A model generated the notes under the pieces. That model had not been told where the DNA came from and made no database searches. It saw only the letters and a list, made by a program, of their open reading frames with translations. Positions 23,198 to 55,530 of a stretch of DNA of 64,000 nucleotides are shown here, piece after piece. Source of the DNA: Trichosphaerium sp. ATCC 40318. Its lineage: Eukaryota > Protista > Tubulinea. The number at the start of each line of letters is the position of its first letter. Within the stretch, counting starts at the first letter, position 1. The stretch spans positions 682,001 to 746,000 of the forward strand of contig JALMLS010000455.1 in the NCBI GenBank assembly GCA_038496445.1, given 5' to 3'. Made by a program: the position numbers and the translations under genes.

Positions 23198-26100
23198 ATG
23201 GCCCAAATTAAATCCGCTCGTGGTGATGATCTTTTGGTGTTTAGTAAGTGGGTTTTTTTTGAAGTTGTCATGAATGAGTCGTTTTTTAGGAAACATATTC
23301 ACTCTGGATGAGGCTTGTTTTTACAAAGGGACTTTAAAAAATGGTATCAGACATGGCAAAGGCGAAATGACATGGTACTTTGATAACGATGTTACTGGTA
23401 AGAGAGTGTTTTTGTGATGATTACCAAAAATACTTAGGCTATAAGAATGGTAGCAAATACATTGGCGACTTTGTGGATGGCAAAATGACAGGAAAAGGAG
23501 AGCTTTATTCGCCAGATGGTACCAAATACATTGGCGACCTTGTGGATGATAAGTTAACAGGGAAAGGAGAGCTTTATTGGCCAGATGGTAGAAAATACAT
23601 CGGTGACTTTGTGGATGGCAAAATGACAGGAAAAGGAGAGCATTGTTGGCTAGATGGTAACAAATACATCGGTGACTTTGTGGATGGCAAGAGAACAGGA
23701 AAAGGAGAGCATTGTTGGCCAGATGGTAACAAATACATCGGTGACTTTGTGGATGGCAAGAGTACAGGAAAAGGAGAGCTTTATTCGCCAGATGGTAGCA
23801 AATACATTGGCGACTTTGTGGATGGCAAGAGAACAGGGAAAGGAGAGCTTTGTTCGCCAGATGGTAGCAAATACATTGGCGACTTTGTGAATGACTATAT
23901 GGCAGGAAAAGGAGAGCTTTATTCGCCAGATGGTAGCAAATACGTTGGTAACTTTGTGTATGGCAAGAGAACAGGAAAAGGAGAGCTTTATTTGCCAAAT
24001 GGTACCAAATACATTGGTAACTTTGTGGGTGAGCAGTTTCTTAATTCGGCAGCTACCAAGATTTCTGGAGAACCCAATCAACACGCCTTTTTCAAAATGG
24101 CAATAATTTGCACCAAAAGTACATCCGCGGCCATTGAAGATGTTTTTGTATTTTCAGAAGATACAAAGTACTTCAAGAAGCTGAATGATTGGTTTATAGC
24201 TCCCACATTTATTACTTTACCTCAAAAAGACAGTTTCGAAATATTGTGTCAGAAATCCTTAATTTTTGAGATCAGTTCCAAAAAGACATTCACAGGATTT
24301 GTTAAACAGATAAGACTACACAAAGATGAAAACAATAGGTTGTGCGATGTGGTATTTGTTTATGATCTTTGTTTACGTGACCCTGAGATATCATTACATC
24401 AAGGTACATACCAACAACATATTTAACTGTGTGCTGATATTAATAATTTAGTTACAACTATAGCACGTGAGATTCCAGGGGCACGTGTGATACCAATAAA
24501 GATACGTGACATAACAAAAGAACAATTTCAAGGTGAATATTACGGATCATTGTCCCCTCAAAAACCATCAATTGCTTCTGGTATGAATCACACAGAATAC
24601 GAATACATAAAGCAACTGAAAGCAAAATTGTTGGTTGTGGGTCATGGAGGAGCAGGTATGCTCAAGCAATATGAGTTTCTTCAAATTAACGCAATATTAG
24701 GAAAGACAACTTTAGTAAAGACGTTGTCAGGTGAAAAAGATGAGAGTGTTGATTCAACAGTTGGCTTTGATACCTCTTCTCTATTGTATGTTTGTTCGAT
24801 ATTCTATATGAGATGTAACACTAACACATGTAGATATGGTAATTTATCATTCACTGTTTTAGACTTTGCTGGACAGATGGAATACAAAGGGCTTCATAAG
24901 TATTTTTTCGCCAAACAACTTGCCATTTACATCATAGTTGTAAGATCCTAAGACCACGTGAACAAACATTTTCTTATCTATTCTTTTTAGATTGACTTAT
25001 CACTATCAATTACAGAGCAGAAAGAGCACCTTAAGCACTGGGTTCATACCCTTAGTAAGTTTTTGAAAGGACAAGATGCGACATACTACTCAGTGATTGT
25101 ATATGGATCCAAGTCGGATATCCATTCAGGAGACTTAGAAGCCAATAAAAAAGAGCTACACTCCTTCCGGATGAAATCGTCAGTGTACCTTGTGTTTTGC
25201 TTAGATGGTACTCATGTTTTAACTAAGCAAGTTTTCTAATGTTGTTTCAAAAGGTATAGCTGGTCTTGAAAAGAAATTGAAGCGTCAAGCAAAATACATG
25301 AAGTCACAGTACCCAAAAGTACCAACTCTATACGACAAAGTACAAAAAGCATTAAAGAAAGCAGTTGTGAAAAAAGATAGATTGAAGGATAACATCATAT
25401 CATTGTACGTTAATTACTTTTTCAGAAACACTGATAATTAACATGAAAATAGTGAAGACGTCACTCAACTGTTACCTGAGACTATTAAAATGGCTCCTAT
25501 TGAGTTGGTTGCCTCGTTAAATTACCTTCACTCTATTGGTAGCATTATGTTTGATGAGGTACTTCTGCTTGCCTAAAACCTTTTCTGTGAGTTTGAACTC
25601 GATTTAATTATCCCTATAGTCATCGTACATGTTGTGTTTAGACCCTCCCATTCTATCTCGTATTATGAGTGTCTTTATTGCTCCTACAGAACACCTGAAC
25701 AGATTATTGAATGGAAATTCTCGGAATCACTGCGCTGTGTTCACTTATGCAGAGGCCCATTACCGCATCTCAAAGGTATTCAAACAGTGTACAATGGTTG
25801 AAGTGAAGCAAGTGATGAGATTCTTGGTTAAATTGTCATTTTGTGTTCGCTTGACAAGAGAAGAAAAGGTAGCACTTTGTAACATGTTTTTATTGGTACA
25901 TTATTTACTTACTGTGGTTAGAAAGTATACGGCTCAGATGGATACATCATAATTTCATTATTGCCAAAAGCTGATATGTTGTACTTTCCACCTGTGACGG
26001 AAAAGGAGGCCAGTATCGATCTAGTTAAACGCAGAAAGGAGGAATTATCCATATTTTCTGACGTGTTTTACTTGAACAAGTTGCCAACAAAGTGGAGGTT

Positions 26101-49000: not shown

Positions 49001-51289
49001 ATATTTCTTCAAACAGCTAATATTTTTTTCAGTTGTTCCTAAGTCTGACATAACACTTTTGACTGAATCTCAAACTATTACTGCTAAAGCAAAACAATGG
49101 TATTCCATACCACAGGATTTATGGAATGAATACTTTTTACTTCCAACTGGTAGTGGCTTAGCTGTGTGCGACAAATTATTTTAAGTTTTATCGTTTTTCT
49201 TTGTTTTTTCCTATTATCTCGTTCTCTTCAAAATTGAAAATATTTTAAGTATTCCTCTTCGTTCCAATATAAGAAAACCAGTTGTGTATAGAAATTGTAT
49301 AATCGTGCACCTCAACAAAGACTAAAAGCGTTATGGGTCTTTTTTTATTGAGGAGAAGTTCCTAATATTGTTGTTTTAGTCACAGAGAGGGTGATAAGAT
49401 AACAGAAAGTCTGTGTATGAATTATCAATATAGACAACCGAAGAAGGTAGTTCTAGCAGAGCTAAGAGGATGTACAAATGTAACTGAAGTCCGTAAAGAA
49501 ATAGCTGGTACACAGGCAACAATTTATTTCGCAGTTTGCTGCTTTCTTACTTTTTTACCAGAAATTATGAATGTTCAAGAAGATGCTGTAATAGTCTACA
49601 ATGGAGTTGAAGGACAATGGAATGAAAACTATGTAAACGAGTTTTATTGCATCGACTCACGTAGTAGAACATTCTACATTGGATTCGACCCAGCTAAATA
49701 TGATACTTCGCGTGGCTCTCCTCTTTCAATGATGAAAGAACTTGAAACTGAGCATTCTGGGTACCCTGATACGTTTGAAGTCATAGATGCCGCTGGTCTC
49801 GTATTTAATGGAGATGGCGTTGTAGCAGCCTCAAATATTTGCAAGGAGTTCTATAGATTCTTTTTCTATGCCACTGATGAAGCACCTTTACAGGTTGTTA
49901 AGCGAGAGAAATGTACGTCATTACTTATTGCTCTTTGTTCTTACCCTCGTAATTATGAAATGTACATATGATATCACGTGATAGATTTGTTTATCGTTCG
50001 AAGCTTACTTGGTTTTTTAGTGCCACAATTAAGTGTGGAGCTGAGTACCTTCATTCCTTTCAGTTATGCATCTTTTATACCTCCAGAAGATACAATGCTT
50101 ATATCCGTTACTGAGTTCACTGGATCTTATTGTGTTCATACTGAAAACTCTTATTGTGAGACAAAGAGCATGGCGTTAATAGCAGGTTGTATGATAAAGG
50201 ATATAGTATTTTATAACCCAACACGTGAGAATATATTGATTGACTATGATGGTATGTAACTTCTGTTTGCTTCCTATTTTTTTTAGTGTTAATCCCTGCT
50301 TTTAGAGAAGATATATTATTCGGAGATATTTATTGACAATCTGTATTCGGCTGTGTCCGTAGATTCACTTCCTTATACTCGAAAAAGCATTACTCCAGCT
50401 AGTGATGCATTATTTATTGTTGACTATGGTATGACTTACACAATTATTTCTGAAGACGAATGTGAGTCAAACAACATGACTTCCTATGTTAGGTACACAT
50501 CACGTTTATTACTGCTTTTTTTTGTTTGCATGTTAGGATCTTTTGGCTTGTGTAGCTTTTTCTAAGTAATTATTTTGTAGGACAATAAAAACTCAAACTG
50601 AAAGTACAAGACTGTTAGCAGGTGTAAAATATTACATAAGAATGAATGGGTCAGGTTATTATAACGCAACGACCATAGAACCTGGTCCATCAGGTGACGA
50701 CAATATCTATATTGATGTTGGATATATTGAGGATAAATGCAGTGTATTAAATAGCTGTAATCATGATGAAAACGCAATTGAAGATCCACATTGTAGAGAA
50801 CTGGTAAAGGTACGAAAAAACGCCACCATACTGAACAGGTTACTATGACAACAATTTAAAGTGAGACAGCAGACTCTTTGTCCATTCCCTTTTTTTTCTT
50901 GTTTTATAAGTCAATCCAGCTTATATTTTTGTGTTTAGAGTTTTGTTTCTTCCGCTGAGGACTATTGTGGAAAAACTGGAGTAAACCCTCAAATGTGTTA
51001 TAAATCTTGTGAGGTTCTTCGGAATGCTAATTGTTTCAACTTTGAAACTGATTGCTCTCTATTCCCTGTGACTAATTGTGCTCAAGTCAACTCAACCTAT
51101 TTTCCAGTTGACCCTTACAGTCCACCTTATTCTGAACCTGACATTGTTCCTTACTGGATATATGTTGGTGTAATACCTGCTGCAGTACTTGCAGTAGTTA
51201 TTATTATAATAGTAATTGTAGTACTTATAGTCTGCTGCAAGAAAAAGGATTCAGATCCAAATGCATACTCAACATTTGGTGATAGTTAA
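46033..51289 (+). CDS. Large type I membrane protein: signal peptide, long Cys-containing ectodomain, juxtamembrane Cys-rich module, TM, short tail with YxxF
   Basis: MAGALNVFLLLLLYVASIAG; many phase-compatible exons; TM IYVGVIPAAVLAVVIIIIVIVVLIV; tail CCKKKDSDPNAYSTFGDS. Confidence 0.8.
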
Positions 51290-51827
51290 CTGCTACCTAA
51301 CGTAGTATATACCAGATTGCATTTATTAGACCAATAAAGATGCATTATTTTAATAAACCATTGTGTGGTTAAACCCGACGGCAAAACAAACAAATTAAAC
51401 ATAGCAAAAATAATTTGTAGTCTGGTAACAAATGAAACCGTGAACACTACAGCGCTGAAAGCAAAGTTATGCATATCCACAGTGAATCAATAAACTTACT
51501 TGTTTTGCAAGTATTGGACAGGTATCATAAAGCAATAGAAGAGAGCCACTATTTACCATGGCACTTGTTTATTTAAGAGGCTACTTTTTACTAAGTGTCT
51601 TCAGCTTGATTAGTGAATTTAAGATGTGAGTATGTATAGGTTTCAAAAATGGAACTTTGTTCACACGTGGGACGAAAGAAACTTGGCTTTTTTTTGATGT
51701 AACTTAACGAATTAAGTCATGTTGATAAGGCGTTCCTGGTAATTGTTATTGGCTGTTTAAACCAACAATACAAGCAACCAGTTCGATACAAGACAGTTTT
51801 ATTCGGTTTAAGCTAAAAACAGAAGAG

Positions 51828-53700
51828 ATGTCTACAAAAGAAAATCTAATAACGCCAACCGCTTTACGACGCTTTGCGCGTAGCATTGTAGATGCGCAAA
51901 CGTTAATTAGTCAAGGCGCGAAAGAAGAACTGTTACAAACGATCACTACATACGCCAAGGATCTCATTGAATCGTACGTAGCGTAGTAATACCATTTAGA
52001 TGATTAATACAGCACAGAGCTGAAAAAGTTTGTAAAAAGCAAGACAGGAAAACAATTGTAGCAAATCACGTCAAAATAGCCATAGAAAACGTCAAACACG
52101 GCGAAGCCGCTCCAACCTTCGAATTTCCTGACTTTGGCTCGGATTCATTGAGCGTTGCCAGCTTCCCTGACTCTGAGGTCGCTAGTAACTGGAGTATGCA
52201 GACTAATACAGGCGGTTTCAGTCCAAAAGTGCGTTAACGAAACACTCTCATAGCAAAGCGAATAAAAGACTTCTCTGACGTGTACCTTGCGTACACTTTT
52301 AGTTAAGTGATCTGGACGGCTTTCAGAATTTGTCGTTATCAAGCCCAACACACGGACAAGCTAGCGGTGTTATTCCTCAAGCAGCTCCAAGAAAAGCGAA
52401 TGCTTTCGCTGGATTTAACTTTGGTTTTGATAGTGGCGCTCAGGTAGTAGCTCCAAGTGAGGACAAACTTCCTGGATCCGCTCAACCAGCTACTGCTTTC
52501 CCTGGATTTAGCTTTGGTTTTGATAGTGGCGCTCAGGTAGTAGCTCCAAGTGAGGACAAACTTCCTGGAACCGCTCAACCAGCTACTGCTTTCCCTGGAT
52601 TTAGCTTTGGTTTTGATAGTGGCGCTCAGGTAGTAGCTCCAAGTGAGGACAAACTTCCTGGACCCGCTCAACCAGCTACTAGTGGCAGTCCTCATGAGGT
52701 TCCAAGGTTTAAAATCGTTCTTGCTGGCGATGGAGGTGTTGGTGCGTTACGTGTTGGTCTCTTTGATGTCAGCTTTATTTTTTTGTATTTCCCACGTGCT
52801 TGTTAGGGACTACAAGTTTATATTTACGATCAACAATGTTAATTTATTTACTGGGTAGGTAAAACGAGTTTGGTAAAAAAATTGCTTACTGGTGGTAAGG
52901 TTTTTACTTGGTTGTTTATCATTTAATGTGACCTACAAGAGTTTGAGACGAATTATATAGCTACAATGGGTGTTGAAGTACATACAGTAAGAGTTACGAC
53001 AAACAGAGGACCAATTGATTTTAACATATGTACGAGTAGTTTTTTTTCATTTTGTTGTCTCTTGACACTCACTATTTTCTATAGGGGACACTGCAGGTGA
53101 ACTTGTTTGTAAAGTTTTCTTGAGTGTTATCTTATTACATTGCTAGGTCAAGAAAAATTTGGAGGACTCAGAGATGGTACACCTTTCCTTTCTGTTTTAG
53201 AAATTTCCGTATCAAAAAAAAAAATTGAATGTTGACTAGTGTTGTAGGATACTATATTGGCGCTCAAGGGGCTATCGTTATGTTTGATATGACTTCTAAA
53301 CTAACATATAAAAATTCCAAGAATTGGATTCAAGATATAAGGAGGGTATCAAGCGACTGTCCTGTGGTGTTATGCGCTAATAAGGTAAGCAAAAAAAATT
53401 GAGTGACTTTTTCACATCTATTCGACGTCTATTTACTCTTCTCTTGTACTCATTCTTACCTCTTAGGCTGATGCTGCAGCTGATAAAATAGAAAAACTAA
53501 GAGAAGAAGATCATGATTTTAGTCTTGCTATCACATCAGTCAAGGAAGGCAGCATTAACGAGCTTTATAATGTATGTACAATTTACTTGCGTATATTCAT
53601 CATAATTTTGTTTTCTGAATGATTACTAATCTTACCCTTCTAGCCGTTGTTGCTACTTACTCGTATATTAACTTATGACCAAAGTATAGAGCTAGCCTAA
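51828..53700 (+). CDS. Histone-fold + FxFG repeats + Ran-like GTPase fusion protein
   Basis: Introns 51974-52017 and 52229-52302 join [42 protein letters not shown] in frame to 3x AFxGFxFGFDSG and [55 protein letters not shown]. Confidence 0.88.
52402..52680 (+). repeat. Three 93-bp (31-aa) tandem repeats with FxFG core
   Basis: Units start at 52402, 52495 and 52588: AF(A/P)GF(N/S)[25 protein letters not shown]. Confidence 0.95.
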
Positions 53701-54121
53701 ACTTTTTTCTCACTTGTTCATTGTCAATGACGTTGTGACTTCTAAAACAGAGCTGTTCTAAATAAATGCATGTAAACAAGATGATTATTAATAAGTTTAG
53801 AAAGCACGTGTTTTGTGACTTGTACAAATAATGTTGATCGATCTCCTTTTGATTTACTGTGTTCATAACACGTTTGTAAGTCCTATTGAGTTTGTAAAAT
53901 CTGAGTGATAGACATACCAATTCAAGTACCTGCCCAGACTCAACTTGTAAAGAAGACTGCTCTTAGAAATGGCGATTAACAGGTGTGGCCAGTGAGCTGT
54001 TTTCAGTCTTAATAGTACAAGTCAAAAGTCTAACAGTACGAGAATGTACACATGTAACACTTAACATGAAAATCACTATTGTTGCCTACACTTATACATT
54101 CTAATTTAAAAAGAGTTCATA

Positions 54122-55078
54122 TTACAATATTGAGCACCAATTTTCTTCAGGTAGCCTTGGTGTGCCATCAACATACATCGAGTCGTATAGAATTTGTCCA
54201 TTCTCATACCAACCCTTCCATTGACCATTTTTTTTACCATTAGCATACATGCCTTGTACCTTAATTTGTCCACTTTCATGCCACTCTTTGTATTCACCAT
54301 GTAGTTTATCATCAATCCACATTTCATGTACCTTGATTTGTCTATTTTCATACCATTCTTTTCCTTCACCATTTTTTTTACCATCAACCCACATTGATTG
54401 GAACTTGAGTTGTCCATCCTCATAAAAATTTACTTCACCATTAAACTTATCATCAACAAATGTTGTTTGTGCCCTAAGTTGTCCATTTTCAAACCAATAT
54501 TGCCATTCACCATTTTTTTTACCATCAACACACATGCCTTGTACCTTAATTTGTCCACTTTCATACCACTTTTTTAGTATACCATTTCGTTTACCATCAA
54601 TCCACATGGCTTGATACATGAGTTGGCCATTTTCTTGCCATTCTTTGTACTCACCATTTTTTTTACCATCAACCCACACGGATTGGATACTGAGTTGTCC
54701 ATTTTCATACCACTCTTTGGATTCACCAGTTTTTTTCCTATCAATCCACATGGATTGGAAACTGAGTTGCCCATTTGCATGCCACTCTTTGTACTCACCA
54801 GTTTTTTTACCATCAACTAGTAGGCATTGTGCATGAAGTTGCCCTCCTTCATACCATTTTTTGTACAATCCATTCTTTGCATATTTGTGTGCTTGTACTC
54901 TACCACTTTTGTACCATCTGATCCAATTACCTTTCCTTTCTAATGCTTCATCAAAGTGCGTATTGATTGCTGCTCTTTTTGAAAGTGTATGGAACTTTGT
55001 GAATGCTTCCGCATTGAATGTACAAATGTACTCTTGAATCTCACAGGGGAGATCCAGTACTGTCAAAGAATACGCCAT
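54122..55078 (-). CDS. Intronless F-box-like + MORN-variant (YwqK-like) repeat protein
   Basis: N-terminal LDLPCEIQEYICTF; about 10 repeats of ~24 aa KKNGEYKEWYENGQL..QSMWVDG. Confidence 0.85.
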   Translation of the reverse strand: MAYSLTVLDLPCEIQEYICTFNAEAFTKFHTLSKRAAINTHFDEALERKGNWIRWYKSGRVQAHKYAKNGLYKKWYEGGQLHAQCLLVDGKKTGEYKEWHANGQLSFQSMWIDRKKTGESKEWYENGQLSIQSVWVDGKKNGEYKEWQENGQLMYQAMWIDGKRNGILKKWYESGQIKVQGMCVDGKKNGEWQYWFENGQLRAQTTFVDDKFNGEVNFYEDGQLKFQSMWVDGKKNGEGKEWYENRQIKVHEMWIDDKLHGEYKEWHESGQIKVQGMYANGKKNGQWKGWYENGQILYDSMYVDGTPRLPEENWCSIL

Positions 55079-55267: not shown

Positions 55268-55530
55268 GTAGTAAAAGAGATGTTTACATATTTCAAAATA
55301 TTTCAAATATTTCAAATATTGCAAATGTTTTAAATGTTGCGAAATTGTTGAAAAACCTGCCAAACTTTTTGTAAGTCAGTTGTTAAAAGTTACGCTAAAC
55401 ACCTGAAAAGCGTTCTACGGTAGTTTGGTAGCGCTTTTCTGTTTTGTTTCAAGTGTTACATTTATTTCATAATATTTGGAATATTTGTAATATTTGAAAT
55501 ATTTGTAACCAGAAAACATCTCTATAGTAC
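55268..55530. mobile_element. Imperfect fold-back / MITE-like element
   Basis: Left end GTAGTAAAAGAGATGTTT..(AAATATTTC)n mirrors right end (AATATTTG)n..AAACATCTCTATAGTAC. Confidence 0.45.

Follow-up and report, generated by a model that had tools for sequence, protein, structure and literature searches.

A transcribed Trichosphaerium gene predicted to join a histone fold and an FxFG linker to a tail-less Ran paralog

Introduction

Ran is among the most conserved eukaryotic proteins. It normally acts as a free soluble switch, and where it is in the cell is sensed only via chromatin-bound RCC1 and cytoplasmic RanGAP. Here, a gene of the amoeba Trichosphaerium sp. ATCC 40318 was analyzed that is predicted to carry a Ran-family G domain behind a histone fold and a linker with FxFG motifs. 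The gene occupies positions 51828-53700 on the forward strand of the window, by which the whole 64,000-nucleotide stretch under analysis is meant (positions 682,001 to 746,000 of contig JALMLS010000455.1, assembly GCA_038496445.1). An earlier reading of the DNA letters, hereafter the original prediction, had proposed that a histone fold, FG repeats and a Ran GTPase are fused at this locus and that the product could be a chromatin-tethered Ran.

Ran's C-terminal tail (residues 173-216) wraps around the G domain and keeps the protein in a GDP-preferring state (PMC8607414; PMC9885160). The acidic tail docks on a basic patch formed by residues 139-142 (PMC9885160), and the binding of RanBP1 and RanBP2 requires the tail (PMC8607414). 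The GTP/GDP bias was 102.9 for human Ran(1-179) versus about 0.11 for the wild type (PMC8607414). Ran-like GTPases and histones are also encoded by giant viruses (PMC9546365; PMC10583209), and Trichosphaerium has a record of heavy gene traffic with giant viruses and of intron gain in virus-derived genes (PMC10521059).

Results

Ten spliced exons form one gene

A protein of 420 amino acids (aa) is encoded by ten exons on the forward strand, with a coding sequence of 1263 nucleotides (nt). The coding frame was unbroken across all ten, including a micro-exon of 12 nt, and every one of the nine introns (44-117 nt) started with GT and ended with AG. The region is eukaryotic DNA of 35-39% G+C with short introns; for the Trichosphaerium genome, 37.7% G+C, a mean intron length of 75 nt and about 8 introns per gene have been published (PMC10521059).

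Transcript contigs of four public sequencing runs (X1, X2, X3 and X5), belonging to four studies and filed under three organism labels, were compared with positions 51300-54100 and aligned at 99-100% identity. All nine joints were found at the predicted bases in spliced contigs of these runs. The listed contig pieces were confined to exons, indicating that the runs were derived from RNA. The leader upstream of the start codon contained no ATG, and at the other end the transcript contigs continued past the TAA stop (53698-53700) to 53716. The original prediction had spliced exons 51828-51973, 52018-52228 and 52303-52741 in frame to seven downstream exons through GT-AG introns; its coordinates and frames were reproduced.

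Two contigs bridged the parts of the protein. Record 5 of X3 (468 nt) joined exons 1, 2 and 3 (51775-51973, 52018-52228 and 52303-52360), and record 7 of the same run was spliced from exon 3 (from 52633) on through exons 4-9. Exon 3 itself was covered by RNA contigs in the pieces 52303-52360, 52447-52569, 52533-52706 and 52633-52740. Contig breaks were restricted to the 93-nt repeats in this exon and their surroundings, where assemblies built from short words are expected to break; across the repeats, continuity from the histone fold to the Ran domain rests on the uninterrupted genomic open reading frame (ORF) of exon 3. This frame begins right after a TAG at the acceptor site, and the first later in-frame Met lies beyond the P-loop. 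Since exon 3 is a single open frame without ATG that takes in the FG units as well as the beginning of the P-loop, the Ran part has no start codon of its own. The histone fold, the FxFG linker and the Ran domain are, with little room for doubt, one gene.

The N-terminus matches histone folds of the NF-YB class

Profile and structure searches for a histone fold were run with the joined residues 1-80 (exons 1 and 2) as the query. Residues 14-71 matched the Pfam family CBFD_NFYB_HMF (PF00808) with an E-value of 2.1e-8 and a score of 34.7 bits (cutoff 21.4), over profile positions 9-65 of 65, that is, from helix 1 to helix 3. The core-histone profile PF00125 (16 bits) and TAF9 (15 bits) each stayed under its cutoff. 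Among solved structures, plant NF-YB6 (5g49_A) was the best match (E 1.2e-4), gapless over 61 residues (12-72), followed by NC2-beta (E 0.023), other NF-YBs and archaeal HMfB. When the exons were searched singly, Pfam returned a histone-fold hint below threshold only. Residues 1-75 are basic, with an isoelectric point (pI) of 9.46, and the RKTI motif of loop 2 is kept.

Judged by these profile matches, the N-terminus belongs with the H2B-like histone folds of the NF-YB/NC2-beta/archaeal class. The original prediction had read likeness to both histone H4 and archaeal HMf here. The histone fold and the archaeal affinity were borne out by PF00808 and the solved structures, whereas an H4-like N-terminus was rejected, PF00125 being below cutoff and PF00808 significant. 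Folds of the NF-YB/NC2-beta/archaeal type exist only as dimers and usually touch DNA or a partner histone fold.

The linker carries one FxFG motif per tandem repeat unit

Residues 76-255 (about 180 aa) form an acidic linker (pI 4.31) that contains 19 F, 20 G and 21 P together with 32 S or T and appears to be disordered. The three FxFG repeats described in the original prediction are present, one in each 31-aa unit of the 93-nt tandem repeat (FNFG, FSFG and FSFG), and an extra PDFG lies in exon 2. From its sequence, the FG character of the linker is real but of low valency and recently amplified. On the opposite strand, an ORF of 118 aa runs across the FG repeats (52339-52695, minus strand); it too consists of three repeats and has the look of a tandem-repeat artefact, not of a gene.

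The C-terminal part is a divergent Ran-family G domain without a tail

Searched against the PDB, exon 8 matched Ran/Gsp1 at about 7e-14, with Rab4 as the next family (3e-8), and exon 5 matched Ran alone. Exon 8 also matched Pfam Ras (1.5e-9), and exon 9 had no PDB match at E<=10. The 120 Ran proteins that gave the best matches were used for comparison. Identity between the G domain and canonical Rans was 50-54% over about 170 residues (182-187 bits), and the alignments ended at canonical residue 174-178. Against five canonical Rans, 75 of the 129 invariant columns were kept, and most losses fell beyond the NKxD motif.

The motifs G1-G5 were all present, including GDGGVGKTS, T42 and, in G5, SVK where canonical Rans have SAK. 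Switch II was identical to that of canonical Rans, including K71, F72 and R76, and the Ran-specific effector stretch read ATMGVEVH versus the canonical ATLGVEVH. The C-terminal helix and the DEDDDL tail, which make up the last ~40 residues, were absent. The protein ends with SIELA, the truncation falling exactly at the boundary of the G domain, and it has no C-terminal prenylation motif, as the C-terminus lacks cysteine. These features point to a divergent, fast-evolving Ran paralog, not a normal Ran. The assignment to Ran made by the original prediction thus stood, with Ran proteins as the best matches; a canonical Ran did not, given about 52% identity, the missing tail and an acidic replacement of the basic patch.

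Cellular Rans are closer to the G domain than viral Ran-likes

For the viral comparison, seven giant-virus Ran-like genes were picked from IMG/VR by a DNA pattern of switch II. The best of them reached 154-156 bits against the amoeba G domain, compared with 182-187 bits for cellular Rans. In a tree, which was used solely for non-grouping with viral sequences, the amoeba G domain stood apart from the viral Rans on a very long branch whose placement is unreliable. None of the seven viral loci examined contained a histone fold or an FG linker.

The C-termini of the viral genes varied. One Ran-like of 166 aa (locus L007, 1898-2395) stops directly after the G domain, one (L004, 2608-3198) has a short non-acidic tail, and another (L003, 2881-3756) a long one in which D, N and I abound; both L003 and L004 carry SVK in G5. 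In the giant-virus metagenome-assembled genome GVMAG-S-3300005613-53 (L002, 2096-3934), two Ran-like genes lie side by side. One, of 379 aa, has a degenerate Ran-like domain, tail-less and with DMCGQ for DTAGQ, behind an N-terminal extension that opens with a P-loop-like motif, and the other, of 215 aa, is a Ran with an acidic SSSDDDDL tail. In these sequences, tail loss and tail replacement are seen to recur among viral Ran-likes.

A viral origin of the Ran part was rejected, as cellular Rans were closer than all seven viral genes compared. Given the nine introns of the gene, the simplest origin would be duplication of a host Ran followed by fast divergence.

No equivalent architecture was found

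The histone-fold profile had no relative among 1.84 billion representative proteins. Exon 1 had no match in JGI metagenomes, IMG/VR or the ESM Atlas, the complementary DNA junction of exons 8 and 9 had none in metagenomes, and exon 3 had none in a word-indexed protein search of 5.8-billion clusters. PF00808 was carried by none of the 120 best Ran matches, and no paper was found that combines a Ran-like protein, a histone fold and a GTPase. The gene's own product was returned by no protein search; because the organism's own proteins appear to be absent from the libraries, the blanks in protein searches are weak and no proof of a unique architecture. Across protein, metagenome and viral searches and the literature, the remark of the original prediction that it knew of no described protein with a histone fold-FxFG-Ran architecture agrees with what was found.

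Outside the gene, the only tblastn match of the model in the window was at 24556-25173 on the plus strand (23% identity, E 3e-5). This match lies within a Roco-type GTPase gene and is not a Ran paralog. From its architecture and sequence, the gene very probably represents a lineage-restricted Ran paralog that joins a histone fold, an FxFG linker and a tail-less Ran domain.

Features of the locus and neighbouring genes

The features of the gene are collected in Table 1. Upstream, a neighbouring gene ends at 51289. The part encoded by its last exon (50993-51289, plus strand) has a stretch rich in Cys, a single, strongly hydrophobic membrane span and a short cytoplasmic tail (KKKD), and gave only weak Pfam matches below cutoff. 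Downstream, a single-exon ORF of 318 aa lies on the opposite strand (54122-55078, minus strand); in its product, about ten MORN_2 repeats (PF07661, E 8.5e-36) come after an N-terminus resembling an F-box (LDLPCEIQEYI). Because it is intronless in an intron-rich genome, this gene may have been acquired recently and is possibly of virus type. No record of its exact product was present in the contig collection looked up. Short direct repeats of the type ATATTTCAAAT / ATATTTGTAAT occur at 55290-55500, upstream of the MORN gene.

Table 1. Coordinates of the transcript, its exons and the predicted protein features in the window.
Feature	Position	Strand	Evidence
5' untranslated leader	51763-51827	+	X1 record 1 starts at 51763, X3 record 5 at 51775; no joint upstream
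Exon 1: start codon, then helix 1, loop 1 and the greater part of helix 2 of the histone fold	51828-51973	+	Joint 51973/52018 in X1 and X3
Histone-fold domain, NF-YB/NC2-beta/archaeal class, residues 14-71, split by intron 1	51867-52084	+	Pfam PF00808
Exon 2: end of helix 2, loop 2 (RKTI), helix 3 and start of the acidic linker, including PDFG	52018-52228	+	Joint 52228/52303 in X3 record 5
Exon 3, without in-frame ATG: linker with its three FxFG units and start of the Ran P-loop (GDGGV)	52303-52741	+	One continuous ORF
Tandem repeat, period 93 nt (31 aa), 3.0 copies, one FxFG per copy	52401-52680	+	TRF, 97% matches, score 532
Ran-family G domain without C-terminal helix or acidic tail; residues 254-420, exons 3-10, closed by TAA	52705-53700	+	PDB matches; alignment to canonical Rans
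Exon 4	52859-52894	+	
Exon 5	52940-53029	+	
Exon 6: 12-nt micro-exon, part of the DTAG (G3) motif	53085-53096	+	GGACACTGC in X3 and X5 contigs between 53030 and 53145
Exon 7	53147-53176	+	
Exon 8	53248-53384	+	
Exon 9	53467-53571	+	
Exon 10	53644-53700	+	Joint 53571/53644 in X2 and X5
Exons 9-10: diverged region of helix 4, strand 6 and helix 5; acidic E-E-D-H at the basic patch; SVK for SAK; stop directly after the G domain	53467-53700	+	Alignment to canonical Rans
AATAAA, candidate polyadenylation signal	53761-53766	+	61 nt 3' of the stop

Discussion

The explanation that accounts best for these features, though a tentative one, is that the protein acts as an anchored, GTP-biased switch of the Ran type that marks a nuclear site. 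The G domain would still bind and hydrolyse GTP, judging from the nucleotide motifs it has kept and from what is known of the family. Lacking a tail, it would favour GTP without an exchange factor, as human Ran(1-179) does, and RanBP1-type Ran-binding domains would be unable to handle it, since they clasp the tail. The histone fold would dimerise the protein and anchor it to DNA, chromatin or a histone-fold partner, while the FxFG motifs and the NTF2-binding residues retained in switch II (K71, F72 and R76) would provide local docking sites for NTF2 or importin-beta-type receptors. As a mechanism, this pairing of anchoring with receptor docking is possible but somewhat doubtful. The loss of the tail fits the idea of the original prediction, a chromatin-tethered Ran that would have importin docking sites and might serve as a cargo-release platform or a decoy, because tail loss biases human Ran strongly to GTP (PMC8607414).

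A more far-reaching form of this proposal is unlikely on present analysis, namely a self-contained chromatin mark that is independent of exchange factors. Histone-fold dimers would sit on DNA or nucleosome-like partners, the G domain would be mostly in the GTP state, and the FxFG motifs would capture NTF2 or importin-beta, giving a hard-wired RanGTP-like signal in the many nuclei of the amoeba. A speculative variant is modelled on the latch of canonical Ran, in which the acidic tail docks on the basic patch. Here, the polarity may be swapped: the basic histone fold may sit on the acidified patch with one nucleotide bound and be free for DNA with the other.

Several observations weigh against an anchored, receptor-docking switch. 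The canonical basic patch HRKK (139-142) aligns with acidic residues in the amoeba protein, E-E-D-H or E-D-H-D depending on the placement of a 3-residue gap. This patch is said to have a role in the binding of importin-beta and CRM1; its charge reversal speaks against fully canonical binding of karyopherins and Ran-binding domains, and binding to importin-beta/CRM1 may be weakened. The very long Ran branch could reflect relaxed constraint. The three FxFG motifs are one unit recently triplicated (97% identical DNA), not three independent signs of selection, and of the Pfam matches listed for exon 3 (E up to 10), none belonged to Nucleoporin_FG. An AlphaFold2 model of residues 1-80, built without real homologs, was of low confidence (pLDDT 68), with two long helices at 10-28 and 32-75 and loop 2 unresolved in place of three distinct helices; since this model is weak, the histone-fold assignment stands on the sequence profiles. 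No single RNA contig crosses the repeats, and 52361-52446 had no listed piece in the four runs. No ortholog of the fusion was found in protein and metagenome searches, from which this organism's own proteins appear to be missing.

The Ran domain evolves fast: it has about 52% identity to canonical Rans, which hardly vary among themselves, and a very long branch. This would also suit a conflict-driven decoy or sensor. Such a protein would display a histone fold, FG motifs and a GTP-like Ran so as to catch or sense factors from giant viruses that replicate in the nucleus, or from selfish elements, that target histones, pores or the Ran system, and would have no role in normal transport. Giant viruses have genes for histones as well as for Ran-like GTPases (PMC9546365; PMC10583209), several of the viral Ran-likes are tail-less too, and the traffic of genes between Trichosphaerium and giant viruses is reportedly heavy (PMC10521059). 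In Drosophila, Ran-like retrogenes have been linked to conflict (PMC8645118). Only one copy lies in the window, however, with no expanded family, and fast evolution also fits plain neofunctionalisation or relaxed constraint; a decoy seems rather improbable. Less probable again is a young chimera without selected function, in which a histone-fold exon pair and a repeat linker came to lie before a duplicated, decaying Ran by exon shuffling and the product is transcribed and spliced while drifting. The near-identical repeat units imply recent change, the histone-fold part has no homolog in protein, metagenome and viral searches, and the C-terminal third of the G domain is strongly diverged and truncated. 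Yet the frame of 420 codons is intact over ten exons, micro-exon included, no G motif and no part of switch II has been lost, expression was seen in four independent studies, and the truncation sits at the domain boundary rather than at random.

Capture of the Ran-like part, or of the whole fusion, from a giant virus with later gain of introns is very unlikely. Tail loss (L007 and the 379-aa gene of L002), an N-terminal extension (L002) and SVK in G5 (L003 and L004) all have viral counterparts, intron gain is reported for virus-derived Trichosphaerium genes (PMC10521059), and the single-exon F-box-like/MORN_2 gene adjoins; against this stand the higher scores of cellular Rans (182-187 bits at 50-54% identity over ~170 aa, versus 154-156 for the best viral ones), the nine spliceosomal introns, the lack of an IMG/VR match for exon 1 and, weakly, the lack of grouping with viral Rans in the tree. 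The original prediction had itself considered that the histone-fold and Ran exons might belong to separate genes. The gap in RNA coverage at 52361-52446 and over the repeats would allow two separate genes, a small one for the histone fold and a Ran-like one, whose junction is only apparent. This too is scarcely credible: X3 record 5 joins exon 2 to exon 3 and runs 58 nt into it, record 7 extends from exon 3 into the Ran exons, and exon 3 is open from acceptor to P-loop without an ATG, with a stop codon directly before the acceptor and the first in-frame Met after the P-loop.

If the anchored Ran-type switch is the correct reading, the gene would represent a second, RCC1-independent route to mark chromatin for transport receptors, and it could serve as a compact tool to tether RanGTP-like activity. 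With a natural tail-less Ran joined to a histone fold and FxFG motifs, nature would already have made the experiment of fixing a GTP-biased Ran in place with its own docking sites. If it is instead a decoy, it would add to the picture of conflict over the nucleus between amoebae and giant viruses.

Canonical Ran/Gsp1 shares with the amoeba protein the motifs G1-G5, a near-identical effector stretch, an identical switch II and the lack of a lipid-modification motif. The amoeba protein differs in its N-terminal extension of 253 residues, its 50-54% identity, the absence of the C-terminal helix and DEDDDL tail, the acidic basic patch, and a region after NKxD that a PDB search fails to recognise. 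Engineered human Ran(1-179) and tail-disrupted mutants have a near-identical end point, and the engineered form loses autoinhibition and gains a roughly 1000-fold greater preference for GTP than the wild type (PMC8607414). The amoeba gene, in contrast, is natural and has further surface changes and two added modules, and its GTP preference is only predicted. The giant-virus Ran-likes of Medusavirus, Pithoviridae and metagenomic genomes are likewise divergent Ran paralogs, several of them tail-less, one N-terminally extended and some with SVK in G5; they are less similar to the amoeba domain than cellular Rans are, and they are intronless where the amoeba gene has nine introns.

The added modules also have known relatives. 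A few FxFG motifs in a charged, disordered stretch are found in Nup2/Nup50 and RanBP3/Yrb2, cofactors of the Ran system that bind Ran through a Ran-binding domain, and the likeness extends to FxFG nucleoporins. In the amoeba protein, by contrast, the FxFG stretch is fused to Ran itself and has only three motifs, which come from one triplication. NF-YB, NC2-beta (Dr1) and archaeal histones match the same above-cutoff profile across helices 1-3 and share the RKTI of loop 2. These proteins stand alone or bear transcription-factor tails and have a known partner (NF-YC, NC2-alpha or themselves), whereas the amoeba fold heads a GTPase; it is related to them at the level of the family profile only, with no closer sequence relative found among the 1.84 billion representative proteins. 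Small-GTPase signalling has already recruited a histone fold for regulation or anchoring in Son of sevenless (SOS), whose N-terminal histone folds reportedly form an intramolecular pseudo-dimer of two folds. In SOS, the two folds belong to the exchange factor, while the amoeba gene places a single fold on the GTPase itself.

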